Positions 20,347 through 45,109 of a stretch of 64,000 nt of DNA are shown in pieces. Each line of letters opens with the position of its first letter. Position 1 is the stretch's first letter. Origin of the DNA: Syncephalis fuscata S228 (taxonomy: Eukaryota; Fungi; Zoopagomycota); NCBI GenBank assembly GCA_025786725.1, contig JAHLTZ010000006.1, positions 62,001-126,000 on the forward strand, given 5' to 3'. The notes beneath the pieces were generated by a model. The model ran no database searches and was not told the DNA's origin. It saw nothing but the letters and a program-made list of their open reading frames with translations. The position numbers and the translations under genes were made by a program.

Positions 20347-21467
20347 ATGTCTCAACTAACGCTACTGGCAAGACGAGCAGCGATCTGTAGTAGGCCAAAT
20401 AGTATCTACACCAGTCATATACGAATAAAAAACAGCCTATGGTCATCGTGGCAATTGACACCACCAACACACACAACACTCGTTTATGGATATGCAAATC
20501 CAGTTATTAAATCAACATCTTGCAACATTATTAATAGAACGTATACTACGTTAAATATTCGACAACATCTATCTAATAGAATACTGGCACTTCAGCATAG
20601 TAAACAATCGTCGTTAGGATATTTTATTTCAACATCAAAGCAGTTGGGTCGTCGTAACTATACTCGCTATGCTTCGTCACATCATCGAAATCTATCCCAT
20701 CTAGTAACGCCAGCCTTGATTTCGTTAAACATAATTATCTACGCAACGTGGGTCTACGCCAAGTGGGACCAAGAAGCACATCCGAACTCGCGCTCAACAC
20801 TTATGAAATTTATGCAACAAAACTTTCTTTGTAGTTCAAACTATGTATTACAAGATAATCGTTGGTGGACACTATTAACAGCTAGCTTTAGCCATAGCGA
20901 GCTATGGCATATGGGCCTCAATATGTTTGCTCTTCATAGTCTTGGTTCATCGGTAAGTAGATCCACGATATAATCAATAGCCCTATCTTACAGTACCATT
21001 CTACCAGCTGGCAACAGTTATAGGTACTCGACGCTTTTTGGCCATTTACCTGATCAGCGGCATTACTGGCTCGTTGACTAGTATTATGTATAATCGCTGG
21101 CGAGAAAACCAAATAGTAGCAAAGTCCCATCTGCCTAGATCGTTATTGCCAATGAATGCTACCCATGGCGCGTCAGGTTAGTATTGTTTGTTTGTAATGG
21201 TATTCATCTAACAATGCCCGTTTAATAGCAAGCATATTAGGCGTGGCGACTGTGTATACACTACTATTTCCAAGTACTCGATTTCTATTGTTTTTCGTAA
21301 TACCTATGCCTGGATGGCTAATGATGACGGCGTTAGTGGGATGGGATGGATTCAGTTTGCTCTCTAATAAGCCTAGCGTATTCGATCATGCGGGTCATTT
21401 AGGCGGTGTGGCCGGCGGACTAGGCACTACTGCTCTGTTAATGACTCGTCTATTCGCACGACGATGA
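20347..21467 (+). CDS. Rhomboid intramembrane serine protease, probably mitochondrial PARL/Pcp1-like, 3 exons
   Basis: Arg/Ser-rich presequence-like N-terminus, RWWTLLTASFSH..HMGLNM, catalytic Ser in HGASA (across an intron), catalytic His in DHAGHLGG. Confidence 0.88.
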
Positions 21468-21488: not shown

Positions 21489-22437
21489 CTATATTTTATT
21501 TTTATTGTGCAACTGAAGATGAGCTCGCAAGCTAGGCATATTGTTTAATTGGCAACGACATTGGTGACAACACAACTGTTTACTAAGCCATGGCTTTGCC
21601 TGATCCAACTCAACCATCTTTACAACAGTGTTGTTAATAACACGGTTAAACATCACATAATGGCTTACTTTAATTTCACCGTCATTTTTTAATAAATCTA
21701 ACATTCGACGAGCCGGCAAAAAGAACTCGGTTGTAAATGAATTGTAATGGATTTTCTTCTTTAAAGAAGGACTACAAAAGTCTTGGCTAATCACATGCAT
21801 ATGAAGTGGTCTAATTACGCTATAAATATACTAGAAATAAACAGTATTTATTGTATACACTACCTTAGACTTGGTATAGCATGAAATCCCATGCGATAAC
21901 ACATTGAACCATAACGTGCTGCGTCATTAGCTCCAGTAGAGGCATGGTCTGCGTCCATATCGTAGGCATGTTCACCAATGGCAGCTTCAGCTATAATGCG
22001 GCCACGCTCCATCATATGCGACAATAGCGCTAAATGCTCTTGTTTCAATTCCGCTAATGTACCTAACGGTTGTCGCGGCATTACTAGCCAATGATGACAA
22101 GACTATAAAATATAAATGTACCAATCTATGCAAGCACTTGACTAAATCGCATTTACCTTAGGATAACAGTCCTTTATTACAACCAGCTCGTCATCCCACC
22201 AGCAGGCCTGCTCAGGAAATCGCTGAGGATCACGACAAAAGGGTAGTAATGCATCACGCCACGACATCGCTTTCTTTGCTTTGCCAACAACAAAAGCCGA
22301 TGCTTTTGAAGATCCAAAAGAATCTCGACTTTCTGTGGCTAATCGTTTCGACGCATTCATTAATTCATCAACTGCAGTCAATTAATTAATAAACCATTAC
22401 ACAAATGCACTGTAAACTCACACGCTGTACGCTTCAT
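21489..22437 (-). CDS. APTX: Aprataxin (HIT-family DNA 5'-adenylate hydrolase with C2H2 zinc finger)
   Basis: IKDCYPK, GFHAIPSLR|PLHMHVISQDF..SLKKKIHYNSF, C-terminal CHQC...HLQLH. Spliced start MKRTA|FDELM. Confidence 0.9.
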
Positions 22438-22513
22438 GTCAGAATCTCAGTACTAAAAGTTAAAAAAATATCAAATTACGTCTAGTACATGCAAAAATAA
22501 AGGTTTGCGCAGC

Positions 22514-22520
22514 AAAAAAA
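22514..22520 (-). terminator. RNA polymerase III oligo-dT terminator (T7)
   Basis: Seven T on the minus strand directly after the tRNA-Lys acceptor stem. Confidence 0.8.
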
Positions 22521-22592
22521 GCCCAATGCGGGGGTCGAACCCGCAACCTTGAGATTAAGAGTCTCACGCTCTACCGATTGAGCTAACCGGGC
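22520..22592 (-). tRNA. tRNA-Lys, anticodon CTT, intronless
   Basis: GCCCGGTTAGCTCAATCGGTAGAGCGTGAGACT-CTT-AATCTCAAGGTTGCGGGTTCGACCCCCGCATTGGGC forms a full cloverleaf with A and B boxes. Confidence 0.97.
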
Positions 22593-22600
22593 TATTGGGT

Positions 22601-22718
22601 AACTACATTACTTCTCATTCCCGCGTGGTCCCCCACCGCAGTACTACAGAAGCGCGGCCTAACTTAACTTCGGAGATCGGACGGGATCCGGTGCTTTCTA
22701 GGCGCAATGAACGTAGTT
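22601..22718 (-). rRNA. 5S rRNA, 118 nt
   Basis: Conserved core GCACCGGATCCCGTCCGATCTCCGAAGTTAAG and TAGTACTGCGGTGGGGGACCACGCGGGAA. Helix I AACTACG/TGTAGTT, helix II GCGCCTAG/TTAGGCCGC and GCTTCT/AGAAGT all pair. Confidence 0.93.
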
Positions 22719-23781
22719 GAAGTGGAAGCAGTTTTTTGCAGGTCGTTCGTAATTTCTTTTACGTAAAAGCCTACCATTATCATGGTATTTGGCTACACAT
22801 ACGTCATAGGATTGCATCGTATACAAAAGCAAACGCATACACGCAATAATAGCAACAGTTATAAACATAGTGCTATCGATAAGCATATATATAATAATGA
22901 TGACAGTATATGCATGTAATCTATTAGTATAGTTATTACTATCATCAGCATAATACAATAAACGAATTATATCAATGAATAACAACAAGAGCATTTATGA
23001 GTAGTACGGTGCAATGTATATGCAGTTATAGAATACGATTACTATTCAATAGTAAAAGTATATATACACATATATTGTGCATATATGCGTACTGCTATTC
23101 AATAGCTATAGCAGATGACAAGGTAATACAGTGCATTAAACGATAAGCATAAGCAACAATAAGAATGCATATAGAGTAGATGACTAGCATACATACAGGC
23201 TGTGTACTATAGTCAATAGCAACAAAGCAAACACGATAATACGAAAGAAAGATAAATAGACTTAGACGTGACGTGCATATAGTATGCCTACTTACCATCA
23301 TAATTACCTGTGAAAGTGATGAACAAAGAATACAGATGGCAAGTACAGTAAGGAATAGAAAGAAAGAGCGCGATAGGTGACGTGATGGAAAGGAATAAGT
23401 GTGATGCATATAGGCTGTGCTAAATGGTGTGTGACTATTGTAAAATAATAAAACGAATAAGTAATAGGAAAAGTATGAATAGTAATGCCGAAGCTATAGT
23501 GCATATAGTCTGATGAGCGACATAGGTTAAATGAGTCGAGTGTTACTAGTAGTCAAACTAGCGTTAGACAAATAGCAGTTCTGAATAGCGTGTAGCCATT
23601 GTAGAACAAAGCGATATATAAAAGAATGAATATAGAGTGAAAGGAGTCTGAATAGCGATGTTAAAGTTATAGTGCATACAATGCAATGAAGAGAATGACT
23701 GAAGTATACTGATACATATAAACAATAGAATGTGTCTAATATATCATATATTAATAACATCTTAATGTAAAGCAAATGACC

Positions 23782-26755
23782 AAAAGATATTACAATAATA
23801 TTTATTGGAACAATAATTAACTGGCACTGATTATGCTGTTTAATAAAAGCTAGCATTATAATATGCATATTAATTGAAAATGCAATGTACATAAATATTA
23901 GAAATGTGTTTTGTTTATTGTAAAATGGGTATGAAGTAAATTTATAGTTGCTCTAATATAAAGGCAACGTATAAAGGTGTTACCAATAAGCTTGTCGATA
24001 TTACTGTTCGTGGCATGATATAGCCGTCAGTGTTTATGACACGGCAATAGTCAGCTAAGTGTCTAATGGTATATGGATATTACTGCGGTGTATATCAAAG
24101 GAACAAAAGGTACTGTTTTAGATCTAGTGTTATGGTCTAGGATTTATAGACAGATACAACTTGCAGACAAACCAGACAGTCAACGTAAAGCTTTCTACTA
24201 TTGCTGTATGTGCTGTTGCTGTATTACTTATATCTGCCACTACAACAATAAATGCCAACCTAAGTCGTCTTCGTCGAGGATTACCGTTGAGTTAAAGACA
24301 AGATTCATATACACTTAGCAAAAACAACAATGCTGTAGAATCAAGCTTGGGTCATCTACGTTAAAATTAACTAGATAGAGGAGCATGGCCAGTGTGTTTT
24401 TAAAAGCTGTAGGCTCCGAGATAGAGCTAGTGCCGCTGAATAAAGTATATTTCCATATAATCCGATGACTGATACTTACAATCACCATACTTTAGTTCAT
24501 TCATATTTTTAATTCGGTTGGTGTAAATTATATACATGATGCATATTATATATTAAAGTGATATTTGTCTTTTTGTTGTTACTATGGTTTTAAGTAATGC
24601 ATACCAAACCAAAATCAAAATAGTGATTTATTAACTCGTTTACTCTATTGTCTATCACATAATATCTATTGTCTTTCGGTAAACATATGTTGCTATCCAG
24701 TCTTCTGTCTATTATTTGAATGTTAAATTGACAAAAAACTATTTCAATATATATGATAATATTGCGATGCAGCTCAAGCGACCAACAAGCATTACGGACT
24801 GATAGGTATCTTCTACTATCTTTACCTTATAATCAAACAATTGGCAACATCAATGCCTGGTCCAGTGTTTTATTATCAGACATGTCGATGCACAACAGCC
24901 AATAATTAGCTCAAATAATTGATCCAAAACCAAGGTTTTATCGACAGGTGGTTTTACTGTGCTAAAATAACTCGTTCATTCCTGTAACCAGACTGCAATG
25001 TCAAATTAAATGAATTTGTGAGCTGACCAGTATATTCGCATAATTTAAATGTTGCAGCTAGTTTATGCACAATAGTAGGTACTTGTAAATAACCACAAGC
25101 TAAGAAATGTTGTAGGGCAATTAACAATTCACTAAGTGATCATCATGCGTGGCAATAACTTAATATAATAGGCCGTAAGTGATGCTGTATATTAACTGAC
25201 TATACACTAATTGCATAGTTACTGTTTGTATCAACAGCTTAATATAATAGGCTGTAATTGGTATTGTATATCAAGCAGCTACACGCCAATTTTGTTATAT
25301 ATGTAATGCGCATAAACAAATTAATATCAATAGATAGTAAGTGATATCTTATAGCAATTGGATATATACCGACTATATTTATGCGTTGTGTTTATTAAAT
25401 AACTTATAGAATTAGATCGTAAGTGGCATTATATATCAATTGGCTATGTACTAACTGCATATTATGCAATGTGTGTATCAATACGCTGCTATTAGTAGAG
25501 AGTAAGTAATATGGCATATTGGCTGATTATGCATTAATTCCATGTTATTTACTGTCTATATCAATGATTTAATGCAAACAGTCCATAAGTGACATTGTGT
25601 CAATTAGTTATGCATTAATTGCATATTCATTGCGTATCAATAACTTAATATTAATAGGCAGTAAGTATTAGTGCATATTAATTAACTATGTATTGTTTAT
25701 ACACTACATGTTTTTATATCAATAATTCAATGCTAATAGGACGTAAGCGATATTGTATGCTAATTAACTGGTTACTAATTACACGTTTATTTTGTATGCT
25801 GATGCTAATACTAATAGGCGGTAGGTGATAATTTATATTAATTATTTATGCGCTAATTGTATATTATATACTTTATGCATCAATGATTTAATAGTAATAG
25901 TAAGTAATATGGGATATTGATGTATTATGAATTAATTTTATGTGATGTTTTGTGTTCAACAACTTGACATTAATAGAGAGTAAGTGATGTTATACATTGT
26001 TGGTTTATACATTAATTCATATCACTTGTGTATATATTTATAAACATAGAATAACCGGTACATCCAATACATTGGCATTAGCAGTAGGATTGAACGACTA
26101 GTTCAATCTATTCTAGGTATATACTAGGTGCAAGGCAAGGTCGTTTGACAAGTGCCGTTCAGCTTATTTATATAGCAAGTTCCAGCCAATGATCCGGTTT
26201 ATTTCTTTTAATCAGTGACACCATTACATCACTAGCAAACCTGAATTCAGTTGTGTTTATTCAACTATTCAGATTTTTAGTAATAAATACATGGCTCCAT
26301 TTTACTTTGTTTGATCAAGTCATCATGTCTATGCTCATGTTTTATTTACATCCAACAATTAGCAAATGATAATCAGCTATATTATTAACATGTTTGCAAA
26401 AATACAAAAGCTTAAATTTACATATTTCAACACTTTGTGCTAATCAACTGTTTTCTCAATAGCTTTAATTTTATTATTTGCTTTTTATGTAACAAGATTC
26501 GATACTGTCAATTAGCTGGCTAATTCATTTAACCATTCTAGTCGCTTGACCAATGATCGCTAGCATCTTCAGTGTAGATACTGCGCTTGTTTATCGCACT
26601 GCGAGTATCAAGTGCTTTCAGATTATCAGCCTCTACTTGTTGTGTAGCTGCCTTTATTTGGGCCATTACAGTTGCATTACGAATGGCCGAAGAGCATGTG
26701 GTAGTGGCAGGACGTGGTTGAGCCTGAGCGTTGGAAGTAGCATAAGAAACGTAGA
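23782..26755. repeat. ~2.97 kb direct segmental duplication, copy A (derived; carries a 3' fragment of VPS72)
   Basis: Near-identical to 42145..45109 (offset 18363 at the left end) with scattered substitutions and 1-bp indels; breaks off inside the VPS72 last exon. Confidence 0.97.
25100..26049 (+). other. Tandem array of homologous 70-80 nt intron-like units separated by 3-nt putative micro-exons (copy A)
   Basis: YAG|NNN|GTAAGT-type junctions at 25172, 25251, 25334, 25416, 25499, 25582 (donor ATAAGT), 25658, 25740, 25818 and 25977; final acceptor at 26049. Confidence 0.7.
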
Positions 26756-42144: not shown

Positions 42145-45109
42145 AAAAGATATTACAATAATATTTATTGAAACAATAATTAACTGGCACTGATTATGCT
42201 GTTTAATAAAAGCTAGCATTATAATATGCATATTAATTGAAAATGCAATGTACATAAATATTAGAAATGTGTTTTGTTTATTGTAAAATGGGCATAAAGT
42301 AAATTTATAGTTGCTCTAATATAAAGGCAACGTATAAAGGTGTTACCAATAAGCTTGTCGATATTACTGTTCGTGGCATGATATAGCCGTCAGTGTTTAT
42401 GACACGGCAATAGTCAGCTAAGTGTCTAATGGTATATGGATATTACTGCGGTGTATATCAAAGGAACAAAAGGTACTGTTTTAGATCTAGTGTTATGGTC
42501 TAGGATTTATAGACAGATACAACTTGCAGACAAACCAGACAGTCAACGTAAAGCTTTCTACTATTGCTGTATGTGCTGTTGCTGTATTACTTATATCTGC
42601 CACTACAACAATAAATGCCAACCTAAGTCGTCTTCGTCGAGGATTACCGTTGAGTTAAAGAAAAGATTCATATACACTTAGCAAAAACAACAATGCTGTA
42701 GAATCAAGCTTGGGTCATCTACGTTAAAATTAACTAGATAGAGGAGCATGGCCAGTGTGTTTTTAAAAGCTGTAGGCTCCGAGATAGAGCTAGTGCCGCT
42801 GAATAAAGTATATTTCCATATAATTCGATGACTGATACTTACAATCACCATACTTTAGTTCATTCATATTTTTAATTCGGTTGGTGTAAATTATATACAT
42901 GATGCATATTATATATTAAAGTGATATTTGTCTTTTTGTTGTTACTGTGGTTTTAAGTAATGCATACCAAACCAAAATCAAAATAGTGATTTATTAACTC
43001 GTTTACTCTATTGTCTATCACATAATATCTATTGTCTTTCGGTAAACATATGTTGCTATCCAGTCTTCTGTCTATTATTTGAATGTTAAATTGACAAAAA
43101 ACTATTTCAATATATATGATAATATTGCGATGCAGCTCAAGCGACCAACAAGCATTACGGACTGATAGGTATCTTCTACTATCTTTACCTTATAATCAAA
43201 CAATTGGCAACATCAATGCCTGGTCCAGTGTTTTATTATCAGACATGTCGATGCACAACAGCCAATAATTAGCTCAAATAATTGATCCAAAACCAAGGCC
43301 TTATCGACAGGTGGTTTTACTGTGCTAAAATAACTCGTTCATTCCTGTAACCAGACTGCAATGTCAAATTAAATGAATTTGTGAGCTGACCAGTATATTC
43401 GCATAATTTAAATGTTGCAGCTAGTTTATGCACAATAGTAGTACTTGTAAATAACCACAAGCTAAGAAATGTTGTAGGGCAATTAACAATTCACTAAGTG
43501 ATCATCATGCGTGGCAATAACTTAATATAATAGGCCGTAAGTGATGCTGTATATTAACTGACTATACACTAATTGCATAGTTACTGTTTGTATCAACAGC
43601 TTAATATAATAGGCTGTAATTGGTATTGTATATCAAGCAGCTACACGCCAATTTTGTTATATATGTAATGCGCATAAACAAATTAATATCAATAGATAGT
43701 AAGTGATATCTTATAGCAATTGGATATATACCGACTATATTTATGCGTTGTGTTTATTAAATAACTTATAGAATTAGATCGTAAGTGGCATTATATATCA
43801 ATTGGCTATGTACTAACTGCATATTATGCAATGTGTGTATCAATACGCTGCTATTAGTAGAGAGTAAGTAATATGGCATATTGGCTGATTATGCATTAAT
43901 TCCATGTTATTTACTGTCTATATCAATATTTAATCAAACAGTTGTAAGTGCATTGTGTAATTGCTATTCATTAATTGCATATTCATTGCGTATCAATAAC
44001 TTAATATTAATAGGCAGTAAGTATTAGTGCATATTAATTAACTATGTATTGTTTATACACTACATGTTTTTATATCAATAATTCAATGCTAATAGGACGT
44101 AAGCGATATTGTATGCTAATTAACTGGTTACTAATTACACGTTTATTTTGTATGCTGATGCTAATACTAATAGGCGGTAGGTGATAATTTATATTAATTA
44201 TTTATGCGCTAATTGTATATTATATATTTATGCATCAATGATTTAATATTAATAGTAAGTAATATGGGATATTGATGTATTATGAATTAATTTTATGTAA
44301 TGTTCTATGTTCAACAACTTGACATTAATAGAGAGTAAGTGATGTTATACATTGTTGGTTTATACATTAATTCATATCACTTGTGTATATATTTATAAAC
44401 ATAGAATAACCGGTACATCCAATACATTGGCATTAGCAGTAGGATTGAACGACTAGTTCAATCTATTCTAGGCATATACTAGGTGCAAGGCAAGGTCGTT
44501 TGACAAGTGCCGTTCAGCTTATTTATATAGCAAGTTCTAGCCAATGATCCGGTTTATTTCTTTTAATCAGTGCACCATTACATCACTAGCAAACCTGAAT
44601 TCAGTTGTGTTTATTCAACTATTCAGATTTTTAGTAATAAATACATGGTTCCATTTTACTTTGTTTGATCAAGTCATCATGTCTATGCTCATGTTTTATT
44701 TACATCCAACAATTAGCAAATGATAATCAGCTATATTATTAACATGTTTGCAAAATACAAAGCTTAAATTTACATATTTCAACACTTTGTGCTAATCAAC
44801 TGTTTTCTCAATAGCTTTAATTTTATTATTTGCTTTTTATGTAACAAGATTCGATACTGTCAAATTAGCTGGCTAATTCATTTTAACCATTCTAGTCGCT
44901 TGACCAATGATCGCTAGCATCTTCAGTGTAGATACTGCGCTTGTTTATCGCACTGCGAGTATCAAGTGCTTTCAGATTATCAGCCTCTACTTGTTGTGTA
45001 GCTGCCTTTATTTGGGCCATTACAGTTGCATTACGAATGGCCGAAGAGCATGTGGTAGTGGCAGGACGTGGTTGAGCCTGAGCGTTGGAAGTAGCATAAG
45101 AAACGTAGA
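42145..45109. repeat. ~2.97 kb direct segmental duplication, copy B (probable donor; continuous with intact VPS72)
   Basis: Matches 23782..26755; its right end runs on into the complete VPS72 last exon. Confidence 0.97.
43460..44404 (+). other. Intron-like unit / 3-nt putative micro-exon array (copy B)
   Basis: Same junction series starting TAG|GCC|GTAAGT at 43534; the sixth junction here keeps GTAAGT (43944); last acceptor at 44404. Confidence 0.7.

Follow-up and report, generated by a model that had tools for sequence, protein, structure and literature searches.

Within a 64,000-nucleotide stretch of the genome of Syncephalis fuscata S228 (contig JAHLTZ010000006.1, positions 62,001 to 126,000; hereafter the window), a gene for 5S ribosomal RNA (rRNA) runs, after a few nucleotides and on the same strand, into a gene for a lysine transfer RNA (tRNA), tRNA-Lys(CTT). 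[quoted passage not shown] The locus raises the question of whether the two genes are transcribed as one precursor and, if so, how the 3′ end of the 5S rRNA is then formed. Our analysis indicates that the locus is probably one of 22 obligatory 5S-to-tRNA dicistronic Pol III units, whose transcripts would be processed by RNase P and a 3′ exonuclease; these 22 units are the organism's entire assembled complement of 5S genes. The dicistronic reading is built on genomic logic and precedent and is, in our view, the best explanation of the layout. At the locus itself, the elements that it joins are as follows:

22600–22718, minus strand: 5S rRNA gene, intact, without a terminator of its own (Rfam RF00001, 105.3 bits, model positions 1–120)
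22593–22599, minus strand: spacer of 7 nt, no T run, predicted single-stranded linker, with a putative RNase P cut at its 3′ end
22520–22592, minus strand: tRNA-Lys(CTT) gene, the second cistron (Rfam RF00005, 68.2 bits; ARAGORN Lys(ctt))
22512–22520, minus strand: terminator, a T7 tract (22514–22520) and then GC, with the first T of the tract serving as the tRNA discriminator base

The two genes are the only matches that Infernal with the Rfam models returned in the 64-kb window, with no other RNA gene among them, and the gathering score of the 5S model is 38. The 5S regions equivalent to box A, the intermediate element (IE) and box C of other species agree with the Rfam consensus. An initial annotation of this stretch had described an intact 5S gene followed on the same strand by tRNA-Lys(CTT), with no oligo-T between the cistrons and a sole T7 tract after the tRNA. 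Infernal/Rfam and ARAGORN recovered both genes with coordinates within 1 nt, and the sequence has the T tract where it was placed; if the 5S 3′ end is set one base earlier, the spacer is 8 nt long.

Census of 5S–tRNA units and their terminators

The arrangement seen in the window holds throughout the 29.36-Mb assembly (371 contigs). Rfam detected 22 5S genes, and a BLAST search with a 5S query yielded the same 22 (22 candidates, 22 scored). Behind every one of them ARAGORN placed a same-strand tRNA gene 6–8 nt downstream: Gly-GCC in seven units, Asp-GTC in five, Ile-AAT in four, and Glu-CTC and Lys-CTT in three each. Spacer length stays within 6–8 nt in all 22 units, and each tRNA class has its own spacer. 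The genome-wide Infernal count of 5S–tRNA pairs that the initial annotation had proposed thus came to 22 of 22, with five partner tRNAs. Seen from the tRNA side by BLAST, all genes for Asp-GTC (5/5), Ile-AAT (4/4), Gly-GCC (7/7) and Glu-CTC (3/3) are linked to a 5S gene, as are three of four for Lys-CTT; in all, 22 of the 23 genes for the five partner tRNAs stand behind a 5S gene. The four tRNA-Lys(CTT) genes, including that of the window, are identical; L026, the sole free copy, is preceded by AT-rich sequence and ends in a T4 of its own. The tRNA genes of the genome number at least 62, and the pairing of 5S with tRNA genes is far beyond chance.

None of the 22 5S genes of the assembly has a T-run terminator of its own at its 3′ end. 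From the first base of the 5S gene to the last base of the tRNA, the longest T run is at most three in every unit, and the first run of four or more (T4–T7) sits 0–4 nt 3′ of the tRNA, again in all 22. A yardstick for these numbers comes from 16 distinct stand-alone tRNA genes of the same genome, 15 of which end within a few bases of their 3′ end in T4–T6, nearly always followed by GC. T4 thus evidently serves this organism as a Pol III stop, which makes the lack of one after the 5S genes meaningful: Pol III cannot stop there. At the stand-alone loci L070–L090 the form of the terminator is strikingly regular, T4–T6 and then GC (TTTTGC).

The same stand-alone genes also show what a tRNA gene of this fungus has upstream. 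Their 70 upstream nucleotides are 66–90% A+T, often with ATATAT at about −35 to −50, and a GGAATATATA-type motif lies about 35–50 nt upstream in many tRNA genes among loci L070–L090. The same positions of the 5S-linked tRNAs are occupied by the GC-rich 3′ half of the 5S gene, so that, by the genome's own standard, these tRNAs have no normal landing site for TFIIIB. Transcription of yeast duplex tRNA genes likewise depends on the promoter of the upstream gene (PMC2566860).

The 5S copies themselves are highly uniform. Nineteen of the 22 are identical over 118–119 nt (105–106 bits), which indicates that the genes are maintained; two others carry one substitution each, and one (L022) carries two deletions. 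L022 (G000:C142:7950-8143) is a 5S–tRNA-Gly unit with two 1-nt deletions in the 5S gene (88.9 bits) and one in the tRNA, and is either a decaying copy or a low-quality region of the assembly.

This uniformity bears on a reading in which the units are inactive relics, pseudogenes or a composite repeat resembling a short interspersed element (SINE), while the working 5S genes lie in an unassembled array. The fragmentation of the assembly into 371 contigs and the deletions in both genes of L022 would suit it. Set against these are the 19 identical copies, the intact tRNAs, the presence of every gene copy of four tRNA species within the units, the lack of poly-A tails, and common flanks that lie upstream, unlike those of a retroposon. 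We regard this reading as highly improbable. A SINE-like or retroposed composite was considered as a candidate and rejected, as homology extends 0.7–1.4 kb upstream and not downstream, there are 22 copies (19 identical), and no A-rich tail is present. The initial annotation had left room for a pseudogene or a SINE-like insertion; the 22 copies, intact and nearly identical, are neither.

Sequencing depth bears on the hidden-array part of the same reading. All 21 runs were taken as Logan contigs, and four of them (X1, X2, X6 and X8) were compared. In X1, which is flagged 'RNA?' as a guess, a 120-nt contig corresponding to the 5S gene has a depth of 259, a 49-nt contig over the 5S start and the proximal upstream region has a depth of 78, and contigs running into the upstream flanks of other 5S copies have depths of 12–19. 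The ratio of 5S to flank is thus 14–22, rough as contig depths are, which fits about 22 copies with no large extra array and argues against a large unassembled 5S array. Because this gradient is that of collapsed genomic repeats, X1 is most likely DNA. A contig spanning the junction of 5S and tRNA was found in none of X1, X2, X6 and X8, with X1 covering neither the tRNA nor the junction, and X2 has no contig matching the unit.

Putative promoter elements and a candidate TFIIIA gene

If the 5S gene heads a joint transcript, the elements that would start transcription are of interest. Two lie outside the genes already listed, one directly upstream of the 5S gene and one on another contig:

22719–22774, minus strand: upstream core element, −1 to −56, conserved in 20 of 22 units whatever the tRNA; putative TFIIIB/upstream promoter region
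L031 (G000:C317:561500-564500, about 620–2370 within the locus; outside the window), plus strand: candidate TFIIIA gene with ten C2H2 fingers in six exons

The upstream core has three boxes: the palindrome TTACGTAA at about −45, AAATTACGAA at about −30 and GCAAAAAACTGC at about −15. The exact pattern of the first two of these boxes occurs ten times in 29 Mb, each time directly upstream of a 5S gene, and a reversed-pattern control gave no match in the genome. The core is absent from two units, L007 (G000:C4) and L010 (G000:C113), both with tRNA-Gly. These two have a common sequence from −3 onward, including more than 1.5 kb downstream at 99.6% identity, and unrelated, core-less sequence upstream; they are natural 'promoter-swap' copies.

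The candidate TFIIIA gene emerged from a genome-wide scan for zf-C2H2 domains as ten fingers at about 562.1–563.9 kb of G000:C317, spread over six open exon-like segments. Five short introns are predicted between these, of which four were mapped (38–115 nt). Three of the mapped donors are canonical (GTAAGT or GTATGT), and the fourth was read as GTAGGT from the frame translations. Checked by hand, the intron phases fit the frame changes at the four mapped introns; the borders of the fifth are unmapped. The candidate was compared with known proteins exon by exon. The best PDB match of the exon encoding fingers 4–5 is fingers 4–5 of Xenopus TFIIIA (E = 5.8e-19, with the next unrelated protein at 1e-11), and that of the exon encoding fingers 6–8 is yeast TFIIIA (E = 2e-14), with a designed finger protein close behind. 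The exon for fingers 2–3 matches WT1 better than TFIIIA, so single exons are not all diagnostic. The finger of the CX2C type is at position 7, as in Xenopus TFIIIA. TFIIIA of S. pombe likewise has ten fingers (PMC2566860). L031 is thus a probable TFIIIA gene, apparently intact as judged from its open exons, which bears on the question of TFIIIA presence and integrity raised in the initial annotation; with the gene probably present, the ordinary 5S promoter route would be available.

The position of the tRNA B box invites a different account of initiation on the same dicistronic transcript. TFIIIC tolerates long distances between A and B boxes, and the B box of the tRNA stands at a fixed distance from the 5S gene in all 22 units. 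In this account the promoter is split: TFIIIC would bind the A-box region of the 5S gene together with the tRNA B box about 120 nt away, as in the yeast U6 gene (SNR6), so that the 5S promoter could not do without the tRNA, and TFIIIA would be auxiliary, or dispensable as in Yarrowia. The persistence of L007 and L010 in their core-less form is in its favour, as is the finding that TFIIIA is dispensable in Yarrowia because tRNA promoters drive 5S synthesis there (PMC2566860). It fits less well with the retention of a ten-finger TFIIIA-like gene with open exons and consistent intron phases, with a 5S-specific upstream core kept in 20 of 22 units, and with internal control regions that match the Rfam consensus, which leave the ordinary type-1 route available. 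We consider a split promoter possible but unlikely, and prefer a dicistronic unit that starts from the 5S gene's own promoter.

Upstream cassette and its possible spread

Beyond the core, the units have further upstream sequence in common. Three overlapping features were delimited at the window's unit:

22775–23426, minus strand: 5S-specific diverged upstream block, non-coding, about −57 to −708
22600–23742, minus strand: cassette of about 1.14 kb, −1024 to the last 5S base, common to three units with different tRNAs
23611–23756, minus strand: fragment of an abundant dispersed repeat resembling a transposable element (TE), at the left edge of the cassette

The only matches to the diverged block, at 66–76% identity, lie upstream of other 5S units. 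Comparison of the upstream blocks with one another gave 412 high-scoring segment pairs of at least 200 nt, against none in a reversed-sequence control, and identity among units drops to background right after the tRNA flank. A coding function of the 0.7–1.4-kb upstream block was considered and rejected, as it holds only low-complexity open reading frames, none of them credible.

Much closer similarity connects three units. The window's unit (Lys), L005 (Ile) and L015 (Asp) are 95–100% identical up to the last 5S base, with identity of 0.93–1.00 from about −1000 to +119 in a three-way alignment (L019, L005 and L015). Similarity ends exactly at the 5S 3′ end, after which different spacers and tRNAs follow. 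A cassette with its breakpoint at the 5S–tRNA junction implies that units have exchanged or copied their '5S plus upstream' part, be it by gene conversion, ectopic recombination or mobility of the cassette.

The dispersed repeat at the cassette's left edge gave 339 first-look candidates genome-wide. Its copies have 0.4–1.2 kb in common, with inverted parts (L096–L107), and from its sequence it looks TE-like or foldback-like. The fragment recurs 0.9–1.25 kb upstream of at least eight other 5S units. Beyond the cassette, a stretch of about 517 nt (window 23782–24298) recurs 18 kb away on the same strand at 42145–42661 (G000:C328:104145-104661) with 99% identity, and a 72% copy of it lies at C328:163490-163840.

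A cassette that ends at the 5S 3′ end and begins in a dispersed TE-like repeat also permits an explanation without co-transcription. Here a non-canonical signal within the spacer or close to it would end the 5S transcript and the tRNAs would use their own internal promoters, the layout being a by-product of the '5S plus upstream' cassette spreading onto tRNA transcription start regions by insertion or recombination. The tRNA-class-specific spacers are what native tRNA leaders would be expected to look like, and non-canonical Pol III termination is reported from human cells (PMC3141230). Yet no T4 interrupts any of the 22 units in a genome where T4–T6 followed by GC ends tRNAs throughout. A separate tRNA start would force TFIIIB onto GC-rich 5S sequence, a situation seen at none of the stand-alone tRNA genes examined, and yeast duplex tRNA genes depend for their transcription on the upstream promoter (PMC2566860). 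The cassette would moreover have had to reach nearly all genes of five major tRNAs, leaving none free apart from the single Lys-CTT copy, and such near-complete linkage points to selection for it. Mere adjacency therefore appears improbable to us, and dicistronic transcription remains the preferred account.

A bolder combination of these elements would make the 5S gene doubly dependent on the tRNA downstream: the B box would anchor TFIIIC in a split promoter of the U6 type, and the tRNA would be the sole definer of the 5S 3′ end. The arrangement would have been spread by a targeted mobile cassette of about 1.1 kb, bounded by a transposon fragment, that would move, or recombine, precisely onto the transcription start regions of highly expressed tRNA genes. 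We offer this as a speculative and rather unlikely scenario. If true, a targeted mobile cassette would have created a natural, genome-wide system that couples the supply of ribosomes to that of tRNAs. If the dicistronic reading is right, the cassette structure would suggest how 5S–tRNA units spread.

The surroundings of the window's unit are those of a nuclear gene. An intron-split rhomboid protease gene (window 20347–21467, plus strand) and an aprataxin-like gene (21489–22381, minus strand; DcpS_C/HIT and zf-C2HE domains) adjoin it, the latter starting about 130 nt past the tRNA terminator, in keeping with the earlier description of the 5S gene as dispersed amid protein genes. A bacterial or organellar rrn operon was rejected as a candidate on the grounds that the 64 kb hold only 5S and tRNA, that the upstream sequence is a non-coding repeat and that the neighbours are intron-bearing eukaryotic genes.

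Proposed processing of the units and known systems

In the dicistronic reading, Pol III would start at the first 5S base through the internal 5S promoter, with TFIIIA, TFIIIC and TFIIIB, and the conserved 56-nt upstream core would assist initiation. The polymerase would then read through the 6–8-nt spacer and the tRNA and terminate at T4–T7 followed by GC. Within the transcript, the 5S and tRNA modules are predicted to fold independently: minimum free energy and centroid folds of the 199-nt 5S–spacer–tRNA RNA both show the canonical three-way junction of 5S and, beyond a linker of 7 unpaired nucleotides, a cloverleaf of its own. RNase P would cut at the tRNA 5′ end, freeing the 5S rRNA with a 3′ trailer of 6–8 nt for trimming by a Rex1-type 3′ exonuclease, and the 3′ trailer of the tRNA would be removed and CCA added as usual. 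As a consequence, 5S rRNA and the Gly-GCC, Asp-GTC, Ile-AAT, Glu-CTC and Lys-CTT tRNAs would be held in fixed 1:1 transcriptional coupling.

A single precursor, cleaved by RNase P and then trimmed, had been put forward in the initial annotation from this one locus. The proposed precursor is supported by the genome-wide layout, the intact 5S genes, the lack of any internal run of four or more T and the terminator after the tRNA, and the order of processing has an exact yeast precedent (PMC12129344).

Several points weigh against co-transcription as we propose it. Both the A and the B box are intact in the linked tRNAs, which makes a degree of independent initiation within the 3′ part of the 5S gene possible, and the core-less L007 and L010 indicate that a unit can persist without the upstream core. 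The Pol III termination rules of this fungus were deduced from gene flanks. The folding energy of the precursor is not better than that of shuffled sequences (z = −0.8), and the fold is thus a sign of compatibility and no more. As to a hidden canonical 5S array, the depth argument against it uses contig depths from a run of uncertain kind, set against an assembly of 371 contigs; and the sole run flagged 'RNA?' (X1) behaves as DNA and has no junction-spanning contig.

Runs from other organisms gave a mixed picture. A 1.9-kb contig of organism B (X6) carries an identical tRNA-Lys after about 30 nt with no T run, of which only 7 nt match the 5S gene; these 30 nt could represent the 3′ end of a 5S gene and hint, if weakly, at conservation. 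Other 5S-like contigs of organism B are followed by T4, and in organism C (X8) tRNA-Lys genes stand free, with AT-rich sequence upstream of them.

Metagenome contigs were compared by a degenerate pattern scan and then with Rfam and ARAGORN. Where an environmental 5S gene has a tRNA or tRNA-like element close by, T4–T11 stands directly after the 5S gene in most cases. The scan returned unrelated eukaryotes only, with no close relative of the 5S gene studied here. Two contigs have no T4 between the genes: L050 (Ga0310345_10026741) with 5S, 8 nt, tRNA-Gly(TCC) and T8, and L060 with 5S, 11 nt, tRNA-Asn and T6. Unlike the units of S. fuscata, these are single junctions in very dense Pol III arrays, and their 5S sequences are unrelated. 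To judge from these contigs, 5S-first junctions thus occur elsewhere as isolated cases; they follow no genome-wide rule there and do not come from relatives of this organism. Of the three 5S genes on L050, two have T7–T11 terminators, and the third continues with no stop into tRNA-Gly(TCC). More generally, L050, L034, L055, L056, L060 and L066 are eukaryotic contigs with extremely dense tRNA arrays, genes often being less than 20 nt apart, that also carry genes for 5S, U1, U2, U4, U6 and signal recognition particle RNA. In six further contigs (L032, L043, L048, L046, L052 and L061) the 5S gene is followed by T5–T6 and then by a B-box element that neither Rfam nor ARAGORN calls as a tRNA; from its sequence, this element may be a tRNA-derived SINE-like module.

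Literature searches of partial coverage found no natural nuclear 5S-first dicistron, and several known systems resemble the units in part. In bacterial and plastid rrn operons (E. coli, PMC5179076) a tRNA likewise lies just 3′ of 5S, and RNase P helps to define the 3′ side of the 5S precursor; these, unlike the nuclear stand-alone 5S genes of an intron-bearing genome, are long 16S–23S–5S units read by a bacterial-type polymerase. The likeness to the distal tRNAs of rrn operons drawn in the initial annotation therefore extends to processing and stops at operon context, with 5S and tRNA alone and no 23S. In mussel and fish 5S rDNA, a tRNA or tRNA-like sequence is also linked to 5S; there it lies in the non-transcribed spacer of tandem 5S arrays and is separate or degenerate and SINE-like (as cited in PMC3464664).

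Closer in mechanism is the tRNA-Arg/tRNA-Asp dicistron of S. cerevisiae, in which RNase P cuts first at the downstream tRNA and Rex1 then trims the 3′ extension of the upstream RNA; Rex1 also matures the 5S 3′ end in this yeast (PMC12129344). The processing logic is that proposed here for the 5S–tRNA units. The upstream cistron of the yeast dicistron is, in contrast, a tRNA, and it is a single locus and not a genome-wide rule.

Closest in layout are the tRNA–5S fusions of Yarrowia lipolytica, which are transcribed and processed in vitro and in vivo into two functional RNAs (Acker et al. 2008, PMC2566860). In both fungi dispersed 5S genes are fused to tRNAs by spacers of 4–8 nt with no terminator between them, the Yarrowia junctions being 4–7 nt (17 nt within a tricistron). 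The partners overlap strikingly: Gly-GCC, Asp-GTC and Glu-CTC serve in both, and a single tricistronic unit of Yarrowia adds Lys-CTT. Only S. fuscata uses Ile-AAT, and Gln and Thr are not among its partners. All 22 5S genes are fused here, compared with 48 of 108 in Yarrowia, as are, again unlike in Yarrowia, nearly all genes of the partner tRNAs. The co-transcript is proven in Yarrowia and predicted here. The main difference is that of order, which the initial annotation correctly gave as opposite: the tRNA comes first in Yarrowia and the 5S gene comes first in all 22 units here. With the 5S gene first, a tRNA promoter cannot simply replace that of the 5S gene, so the promoter logic cannot equal that of Yarrowia.

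The units are of interest to the Pol III and ribosome-biogenesis fields. The only 5S dicistron described has its tRNA in front, which explains 5S synthesis without TFIIIA. In the present units the 5S gene leads, and the rule has no exception: no assembled 5S gene has a terminator of its own, and five of the main tRNAs have almost no gene outside the units. If the dicistronic reading is true, formation of the 5S 3′ end would depend on RNase P, the output of 5S rRNA would stand in a fixed ratio to that of a group of tRNAs, and the units would be a natural test bed for the interplay of type-1 (TFIIIA) and type-2 (TFIIIC) promoters placed 130 nt apart.

Finally, the 5S-first order has been built by design. 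Engineered 5S rRNA–tRNA fusion promoters drive guide RNAs in Rhodotorula, Humicola and Issatchenkia (PMC8542773, PMC8542335), and their use in several fungi shows that this order is workable in fungal cells. As proposed for S. fuscata, 5S and then tRNA are contained in one Pol III transcript, the tRNA serving there as a processing handle for RNase P and RNase Z. Unlike the genes described here, these fusions are man-made, carry a guide RNA as cargo and are no proof that natural genes are so organized; the 22 units would, if transcribed as we propose, be the natural counterpart of the engineered 5S–tRNA promoters used for CRISPR guides.

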